Sequence record: LC597490.1
DNA length: 64,000 nt
Reading direction: 5' to 3' (one strand)
The translations under genes and the position numbers were made by a program. This document shows positions 9,239-60,376 of this stretch, in pieces; the first letter of the stretch is position 1; each line of letters opens with the position of its first letter. Under the pieces are notes generated by a model. It did no database searches, was not told where the DNA came from, and worked only from the letters and a program-made list of their open reading frames with translations.

Positions 9239-10078
9239 ATGTTTACAAAAGGTGCTCAGGTTTATTTCTTAGAACTTGCGGAAGGTGCGAGTTCTTTTAA
9301 TTTTATGATGCCTTATGAAGATGCTCAGGATGTTGTTAACTTTATTCAAGCAACTCCACGTATTTCAATCAAGAATCATGGTGAAGGTATTGCTCAAGAA
9401 AAATTAGAATTACAAAATGTTTCTTTACGTGATATGGAAAATCTTGATTTACCTACAGATGAAGCATGGAAGGTTAATTTCCAAGGTGCTCATCCAATCA
9501 TGGTTGATGGTACTTGTCGTTATTCTTCTAAACTTATTCAATTAGCGAAAGGAGAGATAGAAGAAGAAGTGGTAGTCGCACAATCAGAAGCAATTGTTGA
9601 ACAAGTTGTACAAGCAGACCCGAAACAATCTGCTAAAGATGCATTTAAAGCAAAACTTGCTCAAACGCAAGAAAAACCAATTGTTACACAATCAGTGGTT
9701 CAAGTAGGACCAGGACCAGGACCAGTCGTTGGTCAAGCGCCAATGGTTACAGCAGGGCCAGCTCCTGATCGTGGTAAAAATCCTGGATTAGAATCTATTC
9801 GTCAACAAACGTTACAACAAGCTTCGACTCATGTATCACCACCAGTTGTTGGTAATCCAGTAACAGTTGGTTCAGCTGTTCAAGTTCCAATGACTAGACA
9901 GGTTTCTAGTCAAATTAAGAAAGATGTTTTTAATCCAGTTCCTACTCAACAAAAGAGTAAGATGGAAAGAATTTATGATTTATTATTATCTCAACAACAA
10001 GACAATCAAGAATTGTTAGCTGAAGTTAAGCAATTACGAGCTGAAGTTCAACAATTAACACAAGCTTTATATCAATAG
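9239..10078 (+). CDS. Hypothetical protein with P/Q/V-rich linker and C-terminal coiled coil
   Basis: 279 aa; terminator 10078-10103 follows. Confidence 0.7.
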   Translation: MFTKGAQVYFLELAEGASSFNFMMPYEDAQDVVNFIQATPRISIKNHGEGIAQEKLELQNVSLRDMENLDLPTDEAWKVNFQGAHPIMVDGTCRYSSKLIQLAKGEIEEEVVVAQSEAIVEQVVQADPKQSAKDAFKAKLAQTQEKPIVTQSVVQVGPGPGPVVGQAPMVTAGPAPDRGKNPGLESIRQQTLQQASTHVSPPVVGNPVTVGSAVQVPMTRQVSSQIKKDVFNPVPTQQKSKMERIYDLLLSQQQDNQELLAEVKQLRAEVQQLTQALYQ

Positions 10079-22658: not shown

Positions 22659-22672
22659 TTTCCTTCTTTTTT

Positions 22673-23380
22673 CATGTGTGTAACAGGGATTTATGTCCGT
22701 TCGATTCGGACTACACACACCAAATAAGAGTAATGATAAGTATACATAACAGTGGCCCCTTGAAATAGCTGCCAATGGGGAAGGAATGGGTTTCGGCTTA
22801 TTAAAACGTCCAGCTTCGTATAAATCATTACTCTCCCTTATGGGAAAGCTCATACGTATCGTGTGGGTTTCCTCATAGGGGAGAAAGCCATGTTATTGAG
22901 CTTGAGTATGCTGATCGTAGTTTCCTTGAAAATGAGATGCCATATATACGTATGCTACGGTAGGTTAAGAACTTATTCTTATCTATATCATAGGATATGC
23001 ATTGCGGCCTTACAGAGGTGTCTACTCTGACGAGAATGACCGTAGAAACTACTCTTGCTTGATATGAGGTGAATCTCTTATGATTGAAAGTAAATAGAAC
23101 TTGCTAAGAAGGGGTAAACTCTGAACCGTTTGGACAGGTGCATCCTTCAAAGCATTAACTTCCTAAGTTCAAAAGCTTTCAAGTGGATGGTAAGGGGCAT
23201 AGGGAACCGACCTTGCTCCTTATTTTTCTTAGATATACAAGGGGGCTTATAACCCCACGTCTCATAGTATTACTTCCAAAAATACGACAATTTTTCACAC
23301 ATTAGGTAGAAGAGGTGGCACTCTTTTATCGGGCGATGTGCGTCGCCTTGTATATCTAGTTTATTAAAGGGGGAAAAGCA
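22673..23380 (+). ncRNA. Putative large structured ncRNA (strand inferred from context)
   Basis: About 700 nt without a credible ORF; stems agagtaatgat/atcattactct (22727-37/22824-34), aagctca/tgagctt, tagatatacaagg/ccttgtatatcta (23230-42/23346-58). Confidence 0.5.
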
Positions 23381-28523: not shown

Positions 28524-29813
28524 GTGAAGCAGGATTTATCCTTAGCGCTAGAGACGATTAATGTCTTAGCGGAAGACCCTATAACAGCGCAATTAGAATC
28601 ACAATTTTGTCATCTACACTTACACACACCATGGAGTATGCTCGATGGTTTTTGCGTAATTGATGACTTAATTAAGTTAGCGAAAGAAAGAGGTATGACT
28701 CACATTGGTATTAGTGACCACGGTAACTGTCATGGTCACATAGAATTCTATACCAAATGTAAGGCGGCAGGTATTACACCTGTATTAGGTTGTGAATTAT
28801 ATGAAGCTCCTCAAATGAAATGGAAAAAAGAAGAGTTCGATAAGATGTCTCCAAATTGGAACGGATGGCGTCCAACTATCAACCACCTACTTGTTATCGC
28901 TAAAAACAACGAAGGTTATGCGAATCTATTAGAACTATCTAGTAGGGGTTATCTAGAAGGTTTCTATCGTAAGCCTCGTGTTGACTACAATTTATTAAAA
29001 CGTTTAAGCAAAGGTTTGATCGCAACTAGTGCATGTCTTGGTGGTTCGATTCCTCAATGTATTTTACGAGGGAAAGAACGAGTAGGTAGAAACATTGCAA
29101 AATTTTATAAGAAGATTTTCGATGAGTTCTACTTCGAAATACAACCAAGTGAATTGCCAGATCAAAAGATTGTAAATGAAAAACTGATTCAATGGTCAAA
29201 AGAAATGGATATACCCCTTGTCGTTACGTCGGATGCACACATGCTTCGTAAAGAAGATAAGCCAGTCCATGCTAGTTTAACTACAATTGGACGTAATGAA
29301 GATACATCTGATATCAGTGTATATGACCATGCTTATTTCATGAGTGTAAGAGAAATGCAAGACTATGGTATTCCACAAGAAGCAATCGACAATGCACAAA
29401 AGATTGCTGAAAAATGTAATGTTATAATTGAAATGGGTAATTTACAATTCCCTGAATATGAAGTACCTGAAGGATTCGATTTCGATTCATACTTGGTTCA
29501 TTTATGTGAACAAGCATTCTTCAATATGGCATTAGAAAAAGATATTGATGTTGATTTATACTTACAACGTATGAATTATGAATTAGATGTAATCAAACAA
29601 AAGAAACTTTCAGCTTATATGATTATTGTTTGGGACTTTATTGATTACGCAAAGAGAAATAATATATTAGTAGGTCCAGGTCGTGGTTCGGCAGCTGGTT
29701 CATTGGTTGCTTACTTACTACGTATTACCAACTTAGACCCTATTAAATATGATTTACTGTTTGAACGATTCTTAAATCCTGAACGTAATGCAATGCCTGA
29801 CGTAGATACTGAT
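28524..29813 (+). CDS. dnaE: DNA polymerase III alpha, exon 1 (PHP domain to PDVDTD)
   Basis: HLHLHTPWSMLDG, SDHG, VGPGRGSAAGSLVAY, FERFLNPER.MPDVDTD. Confidence 0.95.
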
Positions 29814-30501
29814 ATGGAAATGTCCCGCCTACTAGTAATAGTAGTGTCGGAACTCTGTGGATTGCTGGAAGCAGCGTAAGCTATTATAACTAAAACGTGA
29901 CTTGAATAAGGTGAGCGTGAATGTTTAAAAATATAATAGTAGTGTTGTAATCAGCAGCCTAGCTTCGTCCGTTATGATAAGGAAGCGCTCTAAGTAGACA
30001 ATATCATACGTTGTATCCCGTGCGATATGTAATCCCGTAATTCTACATTATGTAGTTGGTCTTCCCTCCACTGCGAGCCGTCCCTGTGCGTGAACAGACC
30101 CAGTACTTTGATTAATAGAAGAAGGTTCAACGACTATCGAAAGCGTAGCTTCTATGTGAATAGGAGTGAGTAAGCGAGTAGAGTAGGGTATGTCAGAATA
30201 AAGTAGAATGGAGTCGGTCCCTATCAAGCAATTTATTGTTTCGGGAGGACGAAAAATAGCGCCCGTAAAAGCTATTTGGTCTCTTGGTCTTAAATGATAT
30301 ATTCGAAGTGCAGAGCGCCCGAATGATCTCTTTTATGCAGAATAAAGCTTGTTGAGGCTCAAATGTGTAAGAAAGAAGCAAGGGTAATGATATAGTCTAG
30401 TCCCGATTGTCTGAGTCAAACTACAAATTGATGAATAGCAGTAAGAGTGAGACCTAACAGCTACAGACATGAGAAATTTGGTGAAAGCCAGGGTGTAAAC
30501 G
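29814..30501 (+). mobile_element. Group I intron 1 in dnaE (688 nt, no ORF)
   Basis: Exon ends in U, intron ends in G. IGS gtcgg 29846-50 pairs with ctgat. P attgctggaa, Q aatcagcagc, R gttcaacgacta, S aatgatatagtc. Splicing restores PDVDTD-FDYERR. Confidence 0.9.
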
Positions 30502-31513
30502 TTTGACTACGAAAGAAGGCATGAAGTAATTGATTATGTAACACGTAAATATGGAGCAGATAAAGTATCTCAGATTGGTACATTCGGTACGTTATCAACT
30601 CGTATGGCGTTAAAAGATATTGGTCGTGGATTAGGTATTGACCATAACATCATCAATGAAATGAATAAAATGATTCCTGTACATCAAGGTAAAGTTGCTT
30701 CTATTAAAGATGCATTAGAGCAAGTACCTGAATTACAAGAATATCAAACTATGTATCCTGAGCTATTTGAATTAGCTATGAAGGTAGAAAGCTTACCTCG
30801 TACTAACTCAATTCATGCTTGTGGAATGGTTATTGCGCCGAAGTCATTATATGGTTCCATCCCATTAATTAAAGGAAAAAATGATGAAGTCGTAACGCAA
30901 TATGAAGGCCCGACATTAGAAAAACTAGGTATTATCAAGTTTGACTTCCTTGGCTTAAAGAACTTATCTGTAATTGATATTGCACGTAGGTTAGCAAAGG
31001 AACGTCATGGCGTTGATATTGACCCAGATAAATTAGAACCAGAAGACCCAAAAGTATTTAATACAATCCAGCAAGGATTCACTGACGGATTATTCCAGAT
31101 TGAGTCTGAAGGTATGAAGAAGTTGTTCCGTGGTATTAACAAGGTAGACTTCGAGACATTAATAGCTGGTGTAGCTTTATACCGTCCAGGTCCGATGGAA
31201 CATATTCCTGATTATCAGGCCAAATCAAATGGATTAAAAGAAGTGTCTTATCCTCACGCAGACCTAGAACGTATCACAAAGAACACGTTCGGTATTGCCA
31301 TCTACCAAGAACAAATCATGCAGATTACAGGACAGTTCGGTGGATATTCTCCAGGTCAACAAGATGGATTTAGAAAGGCTATTGGTAAAAAGAGCCAGGA
31401 GGTTATGGATAAGGTATTACCTGAATTACATTCAGACATTCTTGACCACAACTACTCACAAGAGATTGCAGAATACATTATCAACATCATTAAACCATTC
31501 GTTGGTTATGGGT
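30502..31513 (+). CDS. dnaE: DNA polymerase III alpha, exon 2
   Basis: FDYERRHEVIDYV..QIGTFGT, HACG, KFDFLGLKNL, LFQIES, LYRPGP, YQEQIM, FVGYG. Confidence 0.95.
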
Positions 31514-31847
31514 TAACATGTTAGGCCCCTCTAGTGAGTGATTACTAGAGCAAACTCCGAATATGCTGGGACGAACCTTAGAGCCTTTAGTACGAGCATA
31601 CGCCGTAACAATCTAAAGGATTGGTCAATCAGCAGGGATAGCCGAAAGGAAGCCCCCAGAGACTACCAAGGAGCATCTTTATCTTTCTATAATGGAGAGT
31701 TTGATCCTACTGGCTTAGGTGTTTTCACACCTCCTTGTCAATTGGTCAGATTAGCGGTTAGCTTTCGAGCTTTCCGTTATGGAAAGATGGAGATGATGGT
31801 ATAGTCCACTCCCCTAATAAATATCGGGAAATCCGAGGGTATAAAGG
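31514..31847 (+). mobile_element. Group I intron 2 in dnaE (334 nt, no ORF)
   Basis: gggU/ pairs with gccc in P1. P aatatgctggga, Q aatcagcagg, R cagagacta, S atggtatagtcc; terminal G. Splicing restores GYG-F-NRSH. Confidence 0.9.
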
Positions 31848-32722
31848 TCAACCGTTCACATGCTGCTTGCTATGCATATATTTGTTATCAAACTGCATAT
31901 TTTAAGACACACTACCCAATTGAATTTATGTGTGGATTATTAACTATTTTTGGTGAACAACAAGAGAAATGTGTTCAGTACATTGAAGAGTCTAAGCGTA
32001 TGGGCATTAACGTTCTACCTCCTGACATTAACTTCAGTGAGCGTGGATTCTCTATTGATGGCAAAGCTCTACGTTATGGTTTAGCAAGCATAAAAGGAAT
32101 GGGAGAGGCTGTAGTAGATGCAATTCTAGCGGCACGACCATTTGCTTCATTAGAAGATATGATTCAGAAAGTACCAAAACGTATCATGAACAAACGTGTT
32201 ATTAATGTTCTATGTCGTTCTGGAGCTTTAGATGGATTAGGAAATGAACATAAGAACCGATTGGCTATTCTTCAATATCTATACATGCTTCGTGGAGATA
32301 AGGATGATATTTCATATGAAGTATCTAAGTATGATAAGCAAGCTATGCTACAAGATGAAAAGCAATTGATTGGTGTATATGTAAGTTCACATCCATTAGA
32401 AGGTATATGTGAGAAATTAAACTGGGATTACATTGCCGATGGTGATGTTTTTGAAAGCGCTGGTATTATCAGAAGCTTTAAAGAAGTTCGAACGAAACGT
32501 GGTCAGTTAATGGCAATGGTTAATCTCGAAACATTAGATGGTGAGAAGAAGATAGTTGTCTTCCCAGATGTATATGAGAAACTTGATGTTCCATTGCAAG
32601 AAGGACTTATTGTTAAGTTTGCTGCTTACTTCAAGTTTAACTTCCAATACAATGAACGTTCTTGTTTAGCCAAGAAGTTTACGATTCCGAAACGGATTAA
32701 TTCACAGATACTCAAGAAATAA
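31848..32722 (+). CDS. dnaE: DNA polymerase III alpha, exon 3 (spliced product 1058 aa)
   Basis: NRSHAACY, YFKTHYPIEF, LPPDINFS, YGLASIKGMG, C-terminal OB fold; exon lengths 1290+1012+875 = 3177 nt, in frame. Confidence 0.95.
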
Positions 32723-33702: not shown

Positions 33703-33873
33703 ATGAAACTTTTAAAATGTATGGAAGTTGAAGTATTACAATTTGAATATACATCTTATGATGAATACACAGAACATCATGAACAAATGATGAAACGAGG
33801 ATTCACATATCAAGATGACCGAAAAGGTTTAGATGCTGATTCAATTACTGCAACGTACATTAAAAAGCTTTGA
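33703..33873 (+). CDS. Small hypothetical protein
   Basis: SD aaggag before ATG 33703. Confidence 0.6.
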   Translation: MKLLKCMEVEVLQFEYTSYDEYTEHHEQMMKRGFTYQDDRKGLDADSITATYIKKL

Positions 33874-33898
33874 CAATTATTTAATTGGTTAGTAGAAT
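33870..33898 (+). promoter_or_regulatory. Near-consensus SigA promoter
   Basis: TTGACA-17 nt-TAGAAT. Confidence 0.8.
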
Positions 33899-33901
33899 AA
33901 T

Positions 33902-34428
33902 AGTACTACATTACATACTAACTCAACCTTCATGTTTTCAATAATGTAGTACTTGTGGATTGAGTTGAAATCGACTGGAACAACTCTGCTTACGGCTATA
34001 TACAGGGCTATTACGATAAAGGTAATTTTCCTGTCATGCTGGTAAGTATGATTATGATTGGGTGGATGTCATAATCAAAGCAATTGCGATGTGTTGGTTA
34101 CTCAGGCGCCGAGTACCAATAATATTCAATTGGACATTTCCAAACGGAAATATTGTTATTCTTCACGTAAGACGGTTTAGGCGCTGTCTTACAAAAATAT
34201 GTTGAAATCAGCATATGTTTCTATCGTTTATACCATTTTTCTAGTGCATAATATATAAGCCTACTCAACTTATATGTTGTGTACGAAGTGTTCATTGTGA
34301 GTCCTTAGTTCTTGTCCGTTCTCAGGACTCACACAACTATTTGGGTGACTGAAAGCACTTGAATAGAATTACTTACACTATTATCTTTATGTTTGCCTTG
34401 GAGCTTCCCGTGCTTCAAGGCTTTTTTT
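33902..34428 (+). ncRNA. Putative ~520 nt multi-hairpin ncRNA with own promoter and terminator
   Basis: No ORF; about ten stems, e.g. agtactacatta/taatgtagtact, tgattatga/tcataatca, gtaagac/gtcttac, tgtgagtcct/aggactcaca. Confidence 0.65.
34395..34428 (+). terminator. Intrinsic terminator closing the putative ncRNA
   Basis: gccttggagc/gcttcaaggc followed by T7. Confidence 0.8.
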
Positions 34429-34485
34429 GTGCAGTTATTTCATATAGATAGCGGGGCAAGTGAACCGCTACAAGGAGGAGATTCT

Positions 34486-35265
34486 ATGGCAGAATTCGAA
34501 TTATTTAATTACAATGATAGTGAAGTAAGAACATGTGTGAAAGACACACAAATTTGGTTTGTTGCAAACGATGTATGCAAAGTGCTTGAAATTGTGAATC
34601 CACGTACTTCTATTCAACGTTTAGATGAAGATGAAAAGGATGTACACAGTGTGGACACCCATGGCGGAGCACAAAACATGGCTGTTATTAATGAGTCTGG
34701 ATTATATTCACTCGTATTAACATCACGTAAACCACAGGCAAAAGCATTTAAGAAATGGATTACATCCGAAGTCATTCCCGCACTACGTAAGGATGGTTCT
34801 TATTCATTAAAACAAAAGACTCCAGCCGAAATGATGTTAATGTATGCAGAACAAATGGTGAAGCAAGAGAAAGAATTAGCGGCACTGAAAGAAGCACAAC
34901 AGGTTCAACAGGCTCGTATTGAAGGCACAGAGCAACGAGTGGAAACATTAATCCATCATATGAGTGATGTACCTGACCGTGCGAAACTAACACGTAAAAT
35001 TAATGAATTGTCTCGTACAAGAGGATGGTCACAACAAATCTCTTGGCATGAAGTATATTATATTATAAATTCTAAGTATGGTATTGATGTACGACGCCGT
35101 GTACAGAATCGACGCCAACGTATTCAACAGGCTCGTCAACAAGAAGGTAAGCCTTTATACCATGAGAAAACAATCTCTAAGAAGGTTAATGGCTTAGACA
35201 TCCTAGAAGAACAAGGTTTATTAAGTGAAGCATATGAGGCAATTGTGGGGCTTATTACGGCGTAA
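34486..35265 (+). CDS. BRO-N domain antirepressor-like protein
   Basis: FNYNDSEVR, WFVANDVCKVL, INESGLYSLVLTSRKPQAKAFKKWITSEVIPALRK; SD aggagg before ATG 34486. Confidence 0.9.
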   Translation: MAEFELFNYNDSEVRTCVKDTQIWFVANDVCKVLEIVNPRTSIQRLDEDEKDVHSVDTHGGAQNMAVINESGLYSLVLTSRKPQAKAFKKWITSEVIPALRKDGSYSLKQKTPAEMMLMYAEQMVKQEKELAALKEAQQVQQARIEGTEQRVETLIHHMSDVPDRAKLTRKINELSRTRGWSQQISWHEVYYIINSKYGIDVRRRVQNRRQRIQQARQQEGKPLYHEKTISKKVNGLDILEEQGLLSEAYEAIVGLITA

Positions 35266-35296
35266 GCCCCCTTGCTTTTCCTAAGGAGGTAACAGA

Positions 35297-40910: not shown

Positions 40911-40924
40911 CTCATTAACCCCCT

Positions 40925-41515
40925 TATTGCTATTAGCTATTGTATCCTAAAGACATACCCGATGGGTAGAGAATGTTACTATAAGTAAGCAGACGTATCC
41001 CATCGAGTAAGTCTACTTTTAGCAATATATTCAGTGATGTTTACATGTAGGGACATATGAATATACCACACCGTTCATAACCATACCTCTATATCCACCA
41101 CAAATATACAGATACAAATACGAACGCACAAAGCACCTTCATTATGACACCGATAAATCGGAACAATCTTTCTACAAGCATATCGCTAGTCTACCACGCT
41201 TGCGTAATCTGATTGTCTACCCTGAGCAAACGTTACTAAGCTCATAGCGACCCACCCCCTGATACGTCTTTTATTGGTTAATTCCAAAAGGCATTGCAAC
41301 AGGATTGCTTCCTTTATAGGCACATACACATATGAAGGTAAAGTGTTTATTATGCACCTGCCAGAATTGTCTCGTAGAGTTACTCTACCGCAGCGGCTCT
41401 GGGGGACCTTTCAAGTTTAACGTGTTAGTTGGCAATTCCACGCCAGTACAGTGGCATTTATCGTACTGGATTGTATTCAGTTGTTATATGTAAAAACAAA
41501 GTTGTTTGTTTAGCA
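40925..41515 (-). ncRNA. Putative ~590 nt structured RNA/leader on minus strand
   Basis: No ORF between promoter and basic-protein SD; stems ccagtac/gtactgg, gtagag/ctctac, acccgatggg/cccatcgagt. Confidence 0.55.
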
Positions 41516-41521
41516 CTACTT

Positions 41522-41550
41522 ATTGTATATCGTTTTTTCTTGTATTACAA
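41522..41550 (-). promoter_or_regulatory. SigA-type promoter on minus strand
   Basis: TTGTAA-17 nt-TACAAT read on reverse complement. Confidence 0.6.
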
Positions 41551-41579
41551 TACCTTTTGAGAAGGGAGTGAAAATAAAT

Positions 41580-52392: not shown

Positions 52393-52719
52393 ATGAGTGA
52401 CCAACGTAAAAACAGAAAAGAACTACGCACAGGTTTGTATCAGTTCTTGATGATGATGTATTCATCTTATTTAGAATCACAATCACAAGAAGATGCGAAA
52501 TCATTTGTACAACAGGAATTGCAGCATCAATATCGCTTATTCTTTAGTGAAGACATTGATGATGAAATTCTTTTTCTTTTGCTTGAAGAAAGAATTGCGG
52601 CTTTCAAAGATAAATTGATAGAGGCAAAACAAGCAAAGGAAGGGGATTTAGTCCTTCATTACACAGAACAAATAGAAGATATGAAGAAAGTAATGTCATC
52701 AATTAAAAAGGGGAAATGA
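52393..52719 (+). CDS. Hypothetical protein
   Basis: 108 aa, SD gggag. Confidence 0.65.
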   Translation: MSDQRKNRKELRTGLYQFLMMMYSSYLESQSQEDAKSFVQQELQHQYRLFFSEDIDDEILFLLLEERIAAFKDKLIEAKQAKEGDLVLHYTEQIEDMKKVMSSIKKGK

Positions 52720-53798
52720 GAATGTCAGAATTAGATAAAGCCATGGCAGCCATTAACAAAAAATTAGGTAGAACAGTAGTAACACGTTTAACAGAGGACT
52801 TTGTACCTCATGTGAATGTATTTAATACTGGTTCACTTACACTGGATTTAGCAATAGGTCGTGGAGGATATCCTCGTGGTCGTATTGTTGAAATCTTTGG
52901 TGAAGAGTCATCAGGAAAAACGACTCTTTGTTTATTGGCGATTGCTGAAATGCAAAAGTTAAATGAGGGTGCTTGTGTATTCGTAGATTATGAGCACACA
53001 TTCGACGCTCAATTAGCAGCTGCATATGGTGTTGATGTAGAAAAGTTAATCTATATTGACCCTAAAACAGCAGAAGAAGGTATTGACGTTACTGAAGCGT
53101 TAGTACGTACTGGTGAAGTACGATTAGTTGTTAAGGATAGTGTATCTGCAATGGTACCAGCTAAGATTGCTGACTCATCTATTGAACAGCAAACAATGGG
53201 CTTGCTTGCTAGATTCATGAGTACAGTATGTCAGAAGTTAACTGGCCCAGCTTATGCAAATGATTGTACAATTGTCTTCATCAACCAAGTACGTGAAAAG
53301 ATTGGTGCTTATTCTCCAGTTCCTGGTCAAGCAGCAATCACTACTTCAGGTGGACGAGCATTACCATTCTATTCTACAATTCGTCTTCACATCAAACGTA
53401 AGGACCGTTTAAAAGCTCCAGATGGAACTCCAATTGGTCAAAAGATTCTTGCTCGTGTTATTAAAAATAAGATTGGCGTTCCAAATAAAGAGGCATTATT
53501 TGATTTATATTACAATGTAGGTGTTGATAAGGTAGATGAGATTGCTCAGATTGCAGTCTTAGCTGGTATTATCAAGAAAGGTGGAGCATGGCTTCGCTTT
53601 GAAGAACCAAATGGAGAAGTACGAGTTGTTGGTGATGTTGAATATAAATGGCAAGGGAATGCAAAATACCTTGAGTTCTTACAAAACAATCCAATGTTTG
53701 TAATGGAACTTGAAGATCGTATTCGTGGTCGTGAAGTAGAAGCTCCTGAAGCTCGTATCGAAGAGGGCGAAGGTGCAGTAGACGAAAATGCATATTAA
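52716..53798 (+). CDS. recA: Recombinase A
   Basis: TGSLTLDLAIG.GGYPRGRIVEIFGEESSGKTT, DSVSA, FINQVREKIG, GGRALPFY, KNKI. Confidence 0.95.
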   Translation: MRMSELDKAMAAINKKLGRTVVTRLTEDFVPHVNVFNTGSLTLDLAIGRGGYPRGRIVEIFGEESSGKTTLCLLAIAEMQKLNEGACVFVDYEHTFDAQLAAAYGVDVEKLIYIDPKTAEEGIDVTEALVRTGEVRLVVKDSVSAMVPAKIADSSIEQQTMGLLARFMSTVCQKLTGPAYANDCTIVFINQVREKIGAYSPVPGQAAITTSGGRALPFYSTIRLHIKRKDRLKAPDGTPIGQKILARVIKNKIGVPNKEALFDLYYNVGVDKVDEIAQIAVLAGIIKKGGAWLRFEEPNGEVRVVGDVEYKWQGNAKYLEFLQNNPMFVMELEDRIRGREVEAPEARIEEGEGAVDENAY

Positions 53799-58323: not shown

Positions 58324-58352
58324 TTGACAGCAGAGAGGAAAAAGATTACAAT
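58324..58352 (+). promoter_or_regulatory. Near-consensus SigA promoter
   Basis: TTGACA-17 nt-TACAAT. Confidence 0.8.
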
Positions 58353-58391
58353 GTAGGAAACTTCCTTTCTTTGTTTGTTGCGAATATATTG

Positions 58392-58429
58392 AAAAAGGGG
58401 CGAGGGCTAAAAACCTTCGTCCTTTTTTT
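58392..58429 (+). terminator. Terminator-like hairpin in pcrA leader
   Basis: aaaggggcgaggg/ccttcgtcctttt followed by T run. Confidence 0.6.
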
Positions 58430-58456
58430 GTGCATAAAAATTAAAGGGGAGATAAC

Positions 58457-60376
58457 ATGGTAGATTTATTAGAACAACTTAACCCACAGCAACAAGATAT
58501 TGTAAAAGATACGAGAGGACCATTATTAGTTTTAGCAGGAGCAGGTTCTGGTAAGACTCGTGTTCTTACATATCGTATTGCATACTTGTTAAGTCAAGGT
58601 GTAAAGCCATGGAACATCCTAGCCATTACATTTACGAATAAGGCAGCTAGAGAAATGCGTGAGCGTTTAGAACAGTTATCTGGTAAGCAAGCTTTAGATG
58701 TATGGATGGGAACATTCCATGGTATTTGTTTACGAATTTTGTTCCGATTTGGGAAAGAGATTGGATTAGAAAATATCACAATCATTGATGAAAAGGAACA
58801 GAAGAAGTTAATGAAAGAAACATTAGAGCTTTGTAGTTCAAGTATTGAAATTGAACAAGCTTTAAGTATCATTAGTACATTCAAGAATAAATTAGTTACA
58901 CCAACGATGGCATTAGAAGATGCGCCGAACAATCCATACGGAGAAGAAATTGCTCATGTATATATGGCGTATGAAGAAAAAAAAGAAGAGCAAGATTACT
59001 TAGACTTCGATGATATTATCATGAAAGCCATTCATTTATTAGAAGTGAATGAAGTAGCTCGTGATACGTATCAACAACAGTTCCACTTTGTATCATGCGA
59101 TGAATCTCAAGATACGAATGATGCTCAGTATAAGTTGATTAAATTGTTATCAGCTCAACATGGTAATGTAATGTATGTTGGTGATACTGACCAAGGTATT
59201 TATTCATGGCGTGGAGCAGAGATCAAGAATATCTTGAATTTGAAAAGTTATTACCCAGATTTAAAAGAGTATCAACTAGGTCAAAATTATCGTTCAACTC
59301 AAACGATTGTAGATGCTTCAAATGCATTAGTGAAACGTAACAAACAACGTTTAGAAAAAGAAGCATTCTCACAAAATGAGTATGGAGATAAGATTACGGT
59401 GTATCAAGCAGATGATGATTCACGAGAAGCGGATTATGTTGCAAATATTATTCGTCGTGGTCATAATGTTCGTGGTATTCCATATAAAGACTTTGCAGTT
59501 CTTTATCGTATGAATAGACAATCACGAGCAATTGAATCAGCTTTAACTCATGCTGGTATTCCGTATCAAATTATTAACGGAACAAACTTCGCAGACCGTA
59601 AAGAAGTCAAAGATTTAATTGGTTATTTACGTGTTATTAATAATCCGAATGATACATTAGCTTTAGAACGTATTATCAACACACCGAAACGTGGTATTGG
59701 TGATACAACATTAAAGCGTGTGAAGGATTATGGTGATGAATGTGCAATTACATTTGCAAAAGCATTAGAAGTTGTAGAAGATGTTCCGAAAGTAAATGCG
59801 AAAACAGCGATTAAAATCAAAGACTTCTTAACGTTAATGGATAACATGAGAGAAGCTTCAAAGGAAATGCCGATTGCAGAAGTCATCAAGGAGATTATTG
59901 TAAAGACAGAGTACTTGAAGCAGTTTGATATTGCGAAAGAAGAAGACTTAAACCGTGTTGGAAACATCAAAGAATTAATTAACTTAGCTGGTAAATGGGA
60001 TGAAGATGATGACAACGAAGGAAAAGGATTAATGGACTTCTTAGCTGAATCTTCATTGGCAAGTGATGTTGATTCTTTAGATGGTGAAGAAGATGCAGTT
60101 GTTCTTCAAAGTGTTCATAGTTCAAAAGGATTAGAATATGAGAATGTATTCTTAGTAGGTTTAGAGGAGAATATGTTCCCGATGGGTCGGGCCGCTTCTG
60201 GTGATGACTTAGAGGAAGAAAGAAGACTCATGTATGTAGCCATGACTCGTGCAAAGAAACGATTGTTTATTTCAAATTGTCGTCAAAGATATGAGTATGG
60301 TAATCCACGTCCAGTGTTTAACAAACCATCTCGATTCTTACGGGAGATACCAGAAGTATTTGTGAAGCGAATCTAG
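58457..60376 (+). CDS. pcrA: UvrD/PcrA superfamily 1 helicase
   Basis: LAGAGSGKT, ITFTNKAA, DESQD, VGDTDQ.IYSWRG, NYRST, VHSSKGLE, YVAMTRA. Confidence 0.95.
   Translation: MVDLLEQLNPQQQDIVKDTRGPLLVLAGAGSGKTRVLTYRIAYLLSQGVKPWNILAITFTNKAAREMRERLEQLSGKQALDVWMGTFHGICLRILFRFGKEIGLENITIIDEKEQKKLMKETLELCSSSIEIEQALSIISTFKNKLVTPTMALEDAPNNPYGEEIAHVYMAYEEKKEEQDYLDFDDIIMKAIHLLEVNEVARDTYQQQFHFVSCDESQDTNDAQYKLIKLLSAQHGNVMYVGDTDQGIYSWRGAEIKNILNLKSYYPDLKEYQLGQNYRSTQTIVDASNALVKRNKQRLEKEAFSQNEYGDKITVYQADDDSREADYVANIIRRGHNVRGIPYKDFAVLYRMNRQSRAIESALTHAGIPYQIINGTNFADRKEVKDLIGYLRVINNPNDTLALERIINTPKRGIGDTTLKRVKDYGDECAITFAKALEVVEDVPKVNAKTAIKIKDFLTLMDNMREASKEMPIAEVIKEIIVKTEYLKQFDIAKEEDLNRVGNIKELINLAGKWDEDDDNEGKGLMDFLAESSLASDVDSLDGEEDAVVLQSVHSSKGLEYENVFLVGLEENMFPMGRAASGDDLEEERRLMYVAMTRAKKRLFISNCRQRYEYGNPRPVFNKPSRFLREIPEVFVKRI

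Follow-up and report, generated by a model that had tools for sequence, protein, structure and literature searches.

What occupies the sole unannotated stretch between genes gp242 (33703–33873) and gp243 (34486–35265) of the Bacillus cereus phage vB_BceM_WH1? We analysed the last 64 kb of its genome (LC597490.1, 229,829 bp, ~36% G+C; these 64,000 nucleotides (nt) are referred to as the window, and window coordinates equal record coordinates minus 165,829), in which the stretch lies just 3′ of a DNA polymerase III alpha gene split into three open reading frames (ORFs). An original prediction for this locus had proposed a self-contained phage non-coding RNA gene of a class that it did not recognise, and the evidence gathered here supports that proposal. 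The segment at 33905–34428 (+), ~520 nt in length, is almost certainly a real structured RNA gene, with its own conserved promoter and terminator and no ORF, and it represents a new RNA family within the phage-encoded structured RNAs of unknown function. As to what the RNA does, we lean, with limited confidence, towards a main role in trans that is exerted through its loops, with RNAs or proteins as the partners. All elements of the gene described below are on the + strand.

Transcription is predicted to start at about position 33905, downstream of a sigma-A-type promoter at 33870–33898 (TTGACA-17-TAGAAT) which matches the consensus at 11 of 12 positions and is the top site of the region. A genome-wide promoter scan of all 229,829 bp returned five sites scoring at least 11/12, this one among them, and a perfect −35 hexamer combined with a 17-nt spacer is found in only two of the five, the other being at window position 58324. 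In a four-way alignment with related phages, neither hexamer varies and the distance of 17 nt between them is constant, yet each phage has a different spacer sequence; functional promoters typically show this pattern. At the other end, an intrinsic terminator at 34395–34428, formed by a 10-bp stem with six G-C pairs (34395–34421) followed by U7, is kept in all four sequences. Between promoter and terminator there is no ORF longer than 47 amino acids, and the small ones that exist are disrupted by 1- and 3-nt indels in relatives, so that no ORF is conserved. The promoter, the strong terminator and the absence of coding potential thereby stand as originally described.

The interval folds far better than chance. 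The minimum free energy (MFE) of the + strand is −161.4 kcal/mol compared with −117.7 ± 5.3 for shuffled sequences (z = −8.24), the reverse strand of the same interval gives z = −3.68, and a coding control, a 528-nt piece of gp243, gives z = +0.49. Taken together with the promoter, the terminator and the absence of an ORF, these scores establish that the observation is real and far beyond chance. When the four homologues are folded individually, each prediction contains about 11 hairpins in addition to the terminator, which agrees with the chain of unrelated stems that had been noted from the WH1 sequence. In this predicted fold the hairpins are separate, each carries a different conserved loop, there are few classic tertiary motifs, and no repeated motif was seen among the hairpins.

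The four sequences comprise WH1 and three relatives, one in phage Edson (PV796108.1, L002:4036–4567) and two in metagenome contigs: MTEW01000832.1 (L013:2418–2947; MTEW hereafter), found via a gp243 search, and ERR14864770 (L025:5438–5950), a 229-kb Logan contig reached by a protein search and subsequent contig look-up. By sequence comparison the RNA belongs to a small clade of B. cereus-group jumbo myoviruses made up of WH1, Edson and these two metagenomic relatives. A blastn search of phage records showed it in WH1 and Edson only, a plasmid search gave chance matches only, and no relative was found among viral contigs searched with a 19-mer, with a two-loop motif and via a polymerase fragment, nor among genome contigs searched with the two-loop motif. 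The RNA is single-copy in both WH1 and Edson. At all four loci the polymerase pieces are followed by four or five small ORFs, then by a gap of ~600 nt and, beyond it, by an antirepressor-like gene (gp243 in WH1) and a 137-amino-acid ORF. Within this framework the RNA is conserved above all flanking protein genes, the exception being gp241 in the comparison with MTEW, which comes within about a point. Between WH1 and Edson the 3′ half is 96.5% identical (flanking genes 60–93%), between WH1 and MTEW both halves are ~97% identical (3′ half 97.4%; flanking genes 64–96%), and between WH1 and ERR14864770 the 5′ half is 97.3% and the 3′ half 64.5% identical (flanking genes 62–77%).

Two independent comparisons place the switch in divergence near the boundary between hairpins H4 and H5; the RNA therefore behaves like a pair of exchangeable domains, H1–H4 and H5 to the terminator. 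In ERR14864770 one mosaic block within L025:5438–6837 covers the 3′ domain of the RNA together with the first half of the antirepressor-like gene, in which a P22_AR_N domain replaces Bro-N; the C-terminal half of that gene is still 76% identical. Where stems have been replaced, the loops AGGCGCC of H5, CCUACUCAA of H9 and GUUCUUGUCCGUUCU of H10, part of H8 and the 3′ single-stranded tract are nonetheless unchanged, and this retention of loops on replaced stems implies that selection acts on the loop sequences in addition to the pairing.

Covariation among homologues had been suggested as a check. Across H9 and H10, 98.2% of the cells at 28 pairs are paired and 12 of the 28 pairs are compensatory; none of 500 shuffles did as well, and sliding the structure by 1–3 columns left 25–54% paired with 0–2 compensatory pairs. 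The 5′ domain behaves in the same way (53 pairs, 99.5% paired, 7 compensatory; slid controls 32–53% paired with 0–1 compensatory pairs), and over the full length 20 of 150 predicted pairs are compensatory. The most telling single case is H9, which in WH1 and ERR14864770 has the same length of 41 nt and the same 9-nt loop, with 10 of 16 pairs changed and none broken. A further line of evidence comes from nine variant letters inside the RNA in sequencing runs, all of which lie in bulges or are changes of the type G-U to A-U, A-U to G-U, U-A to U-G or G-U to G-C; the changes involving G-U wobble keep their pairs only as + strand RNA. Selection thus acts on both the base pairing and the loop sequences of this RNA.

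The 5′ domain opens with H1 (33903–33952), an 11-bp stem under a conserved 28-nt loop, in which one U-A pair is replaced by C-G in two of the four sequences; the long first stem (11–12 bp) with its large loop had been correctly recognised. It is followed by the short hairpin H2 (33962–33986, GAGUUG/CAACUC), which has two compensatory pairs in Edson (GAGUCA/UGACUC). A pseudoknot between AACUCAA in loop 1 and UUGAGUU just downstream had also been suggested, and the two strands are indeed complementary in WH1, but two of the four sequences have AACUAAA in loop 1 with no compensating change (3 of 28 cells), and four bases of the 3′ strand belong to H2, whose covariation points to a competing local helix; we therefore discard the pseudoknot. 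H3 (33987–34048) is built in three tiers of outer, middle and inner stems below a 7-nt loop, GAUAAAG or GAUAACG, and its 21 pairs are 100% paired with one compensatory and four one-sided changes. The domain closes with H4 (34049–34077), a 10-bp hairpin with three compensatory pairs whose purine-rich, Shine-Dalgarno-like loop reads GGGUGGA, AGGUGGA or AGGAGGG.

The 3′ domain begins with H5 (34081–34132), a 52-nt hairpin whose 7-nt loop AGGCGCC (34104–34110) contains the palindrome GGCGCC and is identical in all four sequences; in ERR14864770 the stem sequence is largely replaced and the element is still a 53-nt hairpin. In the ERR14864770 variant the small hairpin H6 (34133–34157), which the other three sequences all have, is deleted, and H8 (34197–34216) forms anew from a different stem; H7 (34167–34192) shows one compensatory and four one-sided changes. 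A U-rich, single-stranded and partly conserved linker (34217–34243) leads to H9 (34244–34284), a 16-bp stem with six compensatory and four one-sided changes below the invariant 9-nt loop CCUACUCAA (34260–34268), and then to H10 (34296–34333), a 10-bp stem with the conserved pyrimidine-rich loop GUUCUUGUCCGUUCU, for which the helix tested had 12 pairs, six of them compensatory. H11 (34337–34366) is sequence-variable and is represented by a different hairpin at the same place in ERR14864770. Between it and the terminator, the single-stranded 3′ tract (34367–34394) reads UUACUUAC.CUAUUAUCUUUAUG and is near-invariant in all four sequences, the diverged 3′ domain included.

Is the predicted RNA made? 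Parts of the stretch are contained in 15 public runs, three of which are recorded as RNA, and four runs were examined. Two of these are tick metatranscriptome runs from one study which contain a 95–99% relative of the phage. The contigs over the RNA in these runs, at 33952–34393 (depth 67.7) and 34018–34374 (depth 27.6), both fall inside the promoter–terminator interval, and contigs of the flanking genes in the same two runs have depths of 2.4–9.1. The RNA interval is consequently 3–28 times deeper than neighbouring genes, mostly ~6–11 times, in keeping with the high expression that had been foreseen. The excess is confined to the promoter–terminator interval, with the losses at the ends that are expected of assembly, and no contig in the two RNA runs bridges the terminator. 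One further run, X1, for which the library type is not on record, has a flat depth of ~44 over most of the stretch, which indicates that the excess in the RNA runs is RNA. An own promoter, an intrinsic terminator, no ORF and an abundant transcript, as judged by contig position and depth, are the generic signs of an independent small RNA gene, and all are present here.

These data also bear on the idea that there is no functional RNA at all, and that the palindromes are either a DNA-level cluster of inverted repeats bound by protein or what is left of a degraded intron or gene, as might be imagined from the upstream polymerase III alpha gene being split by insertions that carry HNH genes in relatives. 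The evidence disfavours this idea and we find it hardly credible: the fold is strand-asymmetric and its variants keep their pairs through G-U wobble on the + strand alone, RNA runs show the excess depth, and conservation exceeds that of the coding neighbours. Flanking exons are absent and no intron model matches; a group I or group II intron proper is rejected on the same model search and on the genes to either side, gp242 ending at a stop codon of its own and gp243 being equipped with both a ribosome-binding site and a start codon.

The next question is whether the RNA is already known. The Rfam search that had been suggested as a check returned no match at the gathering threshold for the whole window with the 4227 models of Rfam 15, and none at threshold in a further 140 kb of the genome, so that 204 of 230 kb were covered in all. 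A permissive search (E up to 10) of the RNA region gave noise at 12–21 bits compared with thresholds of 36–200, as did a permissive search of the diverged ERR14864770 homologue. Among the results listed, a literature search found no published description of the RNA and no mention of WH1 or of the distantly related phage KLEB27-3 (see below). Arrays of repeats such as CRISPR, ToxI-like RNAs or CsrB/RsmZ sponges, which the original prediction had set aside, are rejected here too: the RNA interval holds no direct-repeat family, only a single 9-nt match in two copies, and the conserved loops all differ. A CsrA-type sponge was likewise considered and dropped, the GGA motif recurring only in the loop of H4.

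Among large phage RNAs, to our knowledge few in number (ROOL, GOLLD) and none of them with a known function, the likeness to ROOL (RF03087) and GOLLD (RF01998) is that of a large (>500 nt), abundant, phage-encoded RNA with conserved structure. The Bacillus-phage phi29 pRNA (RF00044) is made from a strong early promoter and works through loop–loop contacts between its copies, but the WH1 RNA does not match its model, is three times longer and comes from a jumbo myovirus rather than a phi29-like podovirus. The closest architectural counterpart lies outside phages, in RNAIII (RF00503) of Staphylococcus aureus, a 514-nt RNA of 14 hairpins which acts on several targets via conserved pyrimidine-rich loops (PMC3861533; PMC2837412). 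Like RNAIII, the WH1 RNA is a chain of hairpins of similar total size set between a strong promoter and a terminator hairpin; the likeness is architectural only. There is no match in sequence or to the RF00503 model, RNAIII embeds the hld peptide ORF and the WH1 RNA has no conserved ORF, the UCCC loops that RNAIII bears in its H7, H13 and H14 have a counterpart here only in the terminator loop of three of the four sequences, and the WH1 RNA is borne by a phage, in Bacillus and not in Staphylococcus.

This architecture underlies the role in trans that we favour. Host sigma-A RNA polymerase would make the RNA early in infection; early transcription by the unmodified host enzyme is suggested by the near-consensus sigma-A promoter, together with the presence in WH1 of a sigma-70-family protein of its own (a 222-amino-acid ORF; sigma gene at record 9424–9573) and the failure to detect an RNA polymerase beta subunit in the genome. 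The product would then serve as a multivalent binding platform acting in trans, with the conserved, mostly pyrimidine-rich loops of H1, H5, H9 and H10 and the 3′ single-stranded tract as its putative docking sites, in a mode of action that may resemble that of RNAIII. Such an architecture, in which the hairpins stand apart and expose different conserved loops, is more readily understood as a docking platform than as a compact globular RNA. On this model, the efficient terminator would in addition limit transcription into gp243.

Several points weigh against a main role in trans. The four sequences come from one narrow clade with mosaic ancestry, so the number of independent covariation events is small, and the evidence for expression consists of assembled contigs from one study, without ends, strand or time course. 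Antisense sites in the phage genome complementary to the RNA are at chance level, and a pair of matches to the H1 loop at record 164749 and 164844 was rejected, lying inside a 690-amino-acid gene and showing no covariation in Edson. The remaining points favour a role in cis. No sigma-A-type promoter was found between the RNA terminator and gp243. A second unit in the window, at 58324–58457 (+), leads from a perfect TTGACA-17-TACAAT promoter through a leader of 63 nt to a terminator ending in T7-GTGCA (58324–58430), and directly behind it comes a promoterless gene for a UvrD-like helicase of 639 amino acids. The layout and post-terminator sequence of this unit are the same as those of the WH1 RNA. 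Finally, in phage KLEB27-3 (OM634661.1), which is distant (68.7% identity over the aligning part of the polymerase fragment), the syntenic 488-nt gap (L011:16190–16677) contains two promoter/terminator units of ~230 and ~140 nt, one of them with a 12/12 promoter, and these too precede a Bro-N gene. That gap is structured (z = −4.2), with no detectable homology to the WH1 RNA and no match to a covariance model (R1) of H9–H10, and in a search of phage records it matched only itself. Together with the 58324 unit it makes the succession of strong host-type promoter, terminated RNA and gene a recurring layout, found in WH1 and in a distant relative. A third promoter–terminator candidate, at record 52540–52881 (−), proved to be a small protein gene, gp074.

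How far does cis regulation account for the locus? Downstream of the terminator, a spacer with a small conserved hairpin and the gp243 ribosome-binding site (34429–34485, +) leads into gp243 (34486–35265, +), the Bro-N antirepressor-like gene, behind which there is another terminator at 35247–35270. With no sigma-A promoter in the spacer, the RNA unit is probably also a gate in cis, its terminator throttling gp243, which is probably reached only by read-through; RNA contig depth falls from 28–68 to ~4–9 across the terminator. In phage lambda the pR′-tR′ unit has a strong promoter that gives an abundant short terminated transcript, the 6S RNA, and the genes downstream need read-through. The WH1 RNA shares the strong promoter, the terminated abundant RNA and, probably, a read-through-dependent gene downstream, and the 63-nt unit at 58324–58430 is of this simple lambda-6S-like kind.

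A cis-regulatory role may even be the main one, the element being chiefly a leader or attenuator of gp243 that binds a factor or senses a signal and the 520-nt RNA its terminated by-product, although we regard this as unlikely. The WH1 RNA is eight times longer than the 58324 leader and, in contrast to lambda 6S, has extensive covariation and conserved loops; as 63 nt suffice elsewhere in the same genome, gating in cis does not explain 520 nt with 11 conserved hairpins, and we know of no attenuator that needs nearly as much. Nor does it explain why the 5′ domain is 97% conserved when the 3′ domain and the N-terminal domain of the gp243 product were swapped. A riboswitch, a T-box and a ribosomal-protein leader are rejected, with no leader family matching the sequence and no conserved pairing found that would compete with the terminator as an antiterminator; the search for conserved antiterminator or long-range pairings yielded only invariant 6–7-mers. 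A model search of the window recognised no Q- or N-type antiterminator and no put- or EAR-like element.

Another way to read the conserved loops is as contacts between copies of the RNA itself, which would join through the GGCGCC loop of H5 and perhaps others into an architectural assembly like ROOL, GOLLD or OLE and hold or sequester something. The H5 loop, 7 nt long and invariant, gives this reading its substance: its 6-nt palindrome is made of G and C alone although the genome has ~36% G+C, it is kept despite replacement of the stem, and it could mediate self-association; large phage RNAs of unknown function form homo-oligomers via kissing loops (PMC12286853). GOLLD likewise combines a conserved 3′ region with a 5′ region that varies more (PMC12286853). 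We nevertheless think self-assembly quite improbable as the main role. No covariance model of ROOL, GOLLD or OLE matches, the fold is a string of hairpins with no multi-junction pseudoknotted core, supported pseudoknot or GNRA/receptor-type motif, and ROOL and GOLLD lie near tRNA islands, whereas no tRNA genes were found in the WH1 genome. One palindromic loop among ~12 is in any case weak statistical evidence (rough p ~0.02).

The setting of the locus, which directly follows the DNA polymerase genes and precedes those for ribonucleotide reductase and helicase, raises one more explanation: a primer or origin-activating transcript comparable to ColE1 RNA II or the T4 origin transcripts. Both the strength of the promoter and the ~520 nt of structured RNA would suit such a transcript, ColE1 RNA II being of similar size. 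At this locus, however, a strong conserved terminator releases the RNA, there is no inflection of the cumulative GC skew (the minimum is at ~134 kb, where gene orientation flips), and neither an AT-rich unwinding region nor iterons are present. We accordingly hold an origin transcript to be very improbable.

Action in trans as a docking platform remains our preferred reading, and a bolder form of it can be put forward tentatively. The RNA would found a new class of large regulatory or architectural phage RNAs. Made by the host polymerase at the very start of infection, it would use its distinct loops, the kissing GGCGCC among them, to assemble and to capture several host RNAs or proteins at once; we consider this possible but doubtful. 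If it were true, an RNA would serve the phage as a hub for host takeover or anti-defence, a task that usually falls to small early proteins. More generally, as the locus suggests, early takeover by jumbo phages that infect Gram-positive bacteria may involve RNA besides small proteins. For so few sequences the evidence is unusually clean, and the case is a tractable one: WH1 and Edson are isolated lytic phages that can be grown on B. cereus, the fold is modular, its loops can be mutated, and promoter and terminator are cleanly defined.

Some features of the surroundings deserve mention. The upstream neighbour gp242 matched only itself in a protein search. The DNA polymerase III alpha pieces, gp235, gp236 and gp237, lie at 28524–32722 (+) with gaps at 29880–30603 and 31525–31927; HNH endonuclease genes occupy the matching gaps in KLEB27-3 and in the ERR14864770 contig, no intron model matches the gaps, and introns or free-standing insertions are both possible. 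A 669-nt untranslated stretch upstream of gp260 (40911–41579, −) is moderately structured (z = −3.2) and unrelated to the RNA described here. More strongly structured is a non-coding stretch of 722 nt between gp222 and gp223 (22659–23380, +), with an MFE of −226 kcal/mol (z = −7.5) and no Rfam match, which is likewise unrelated to the RNA upstream of gp243. It starts right after a terminator-like hairpin, no sigma-A promoter was found for it, and its 5′ end is predicted to pair with the gp223 ribosome-binding site. The stretch is 85% conserved in Edson, with 12 of 204 predicted pairs compensatory and none broken, and hints that this phage group employs structured RNAs routinely.

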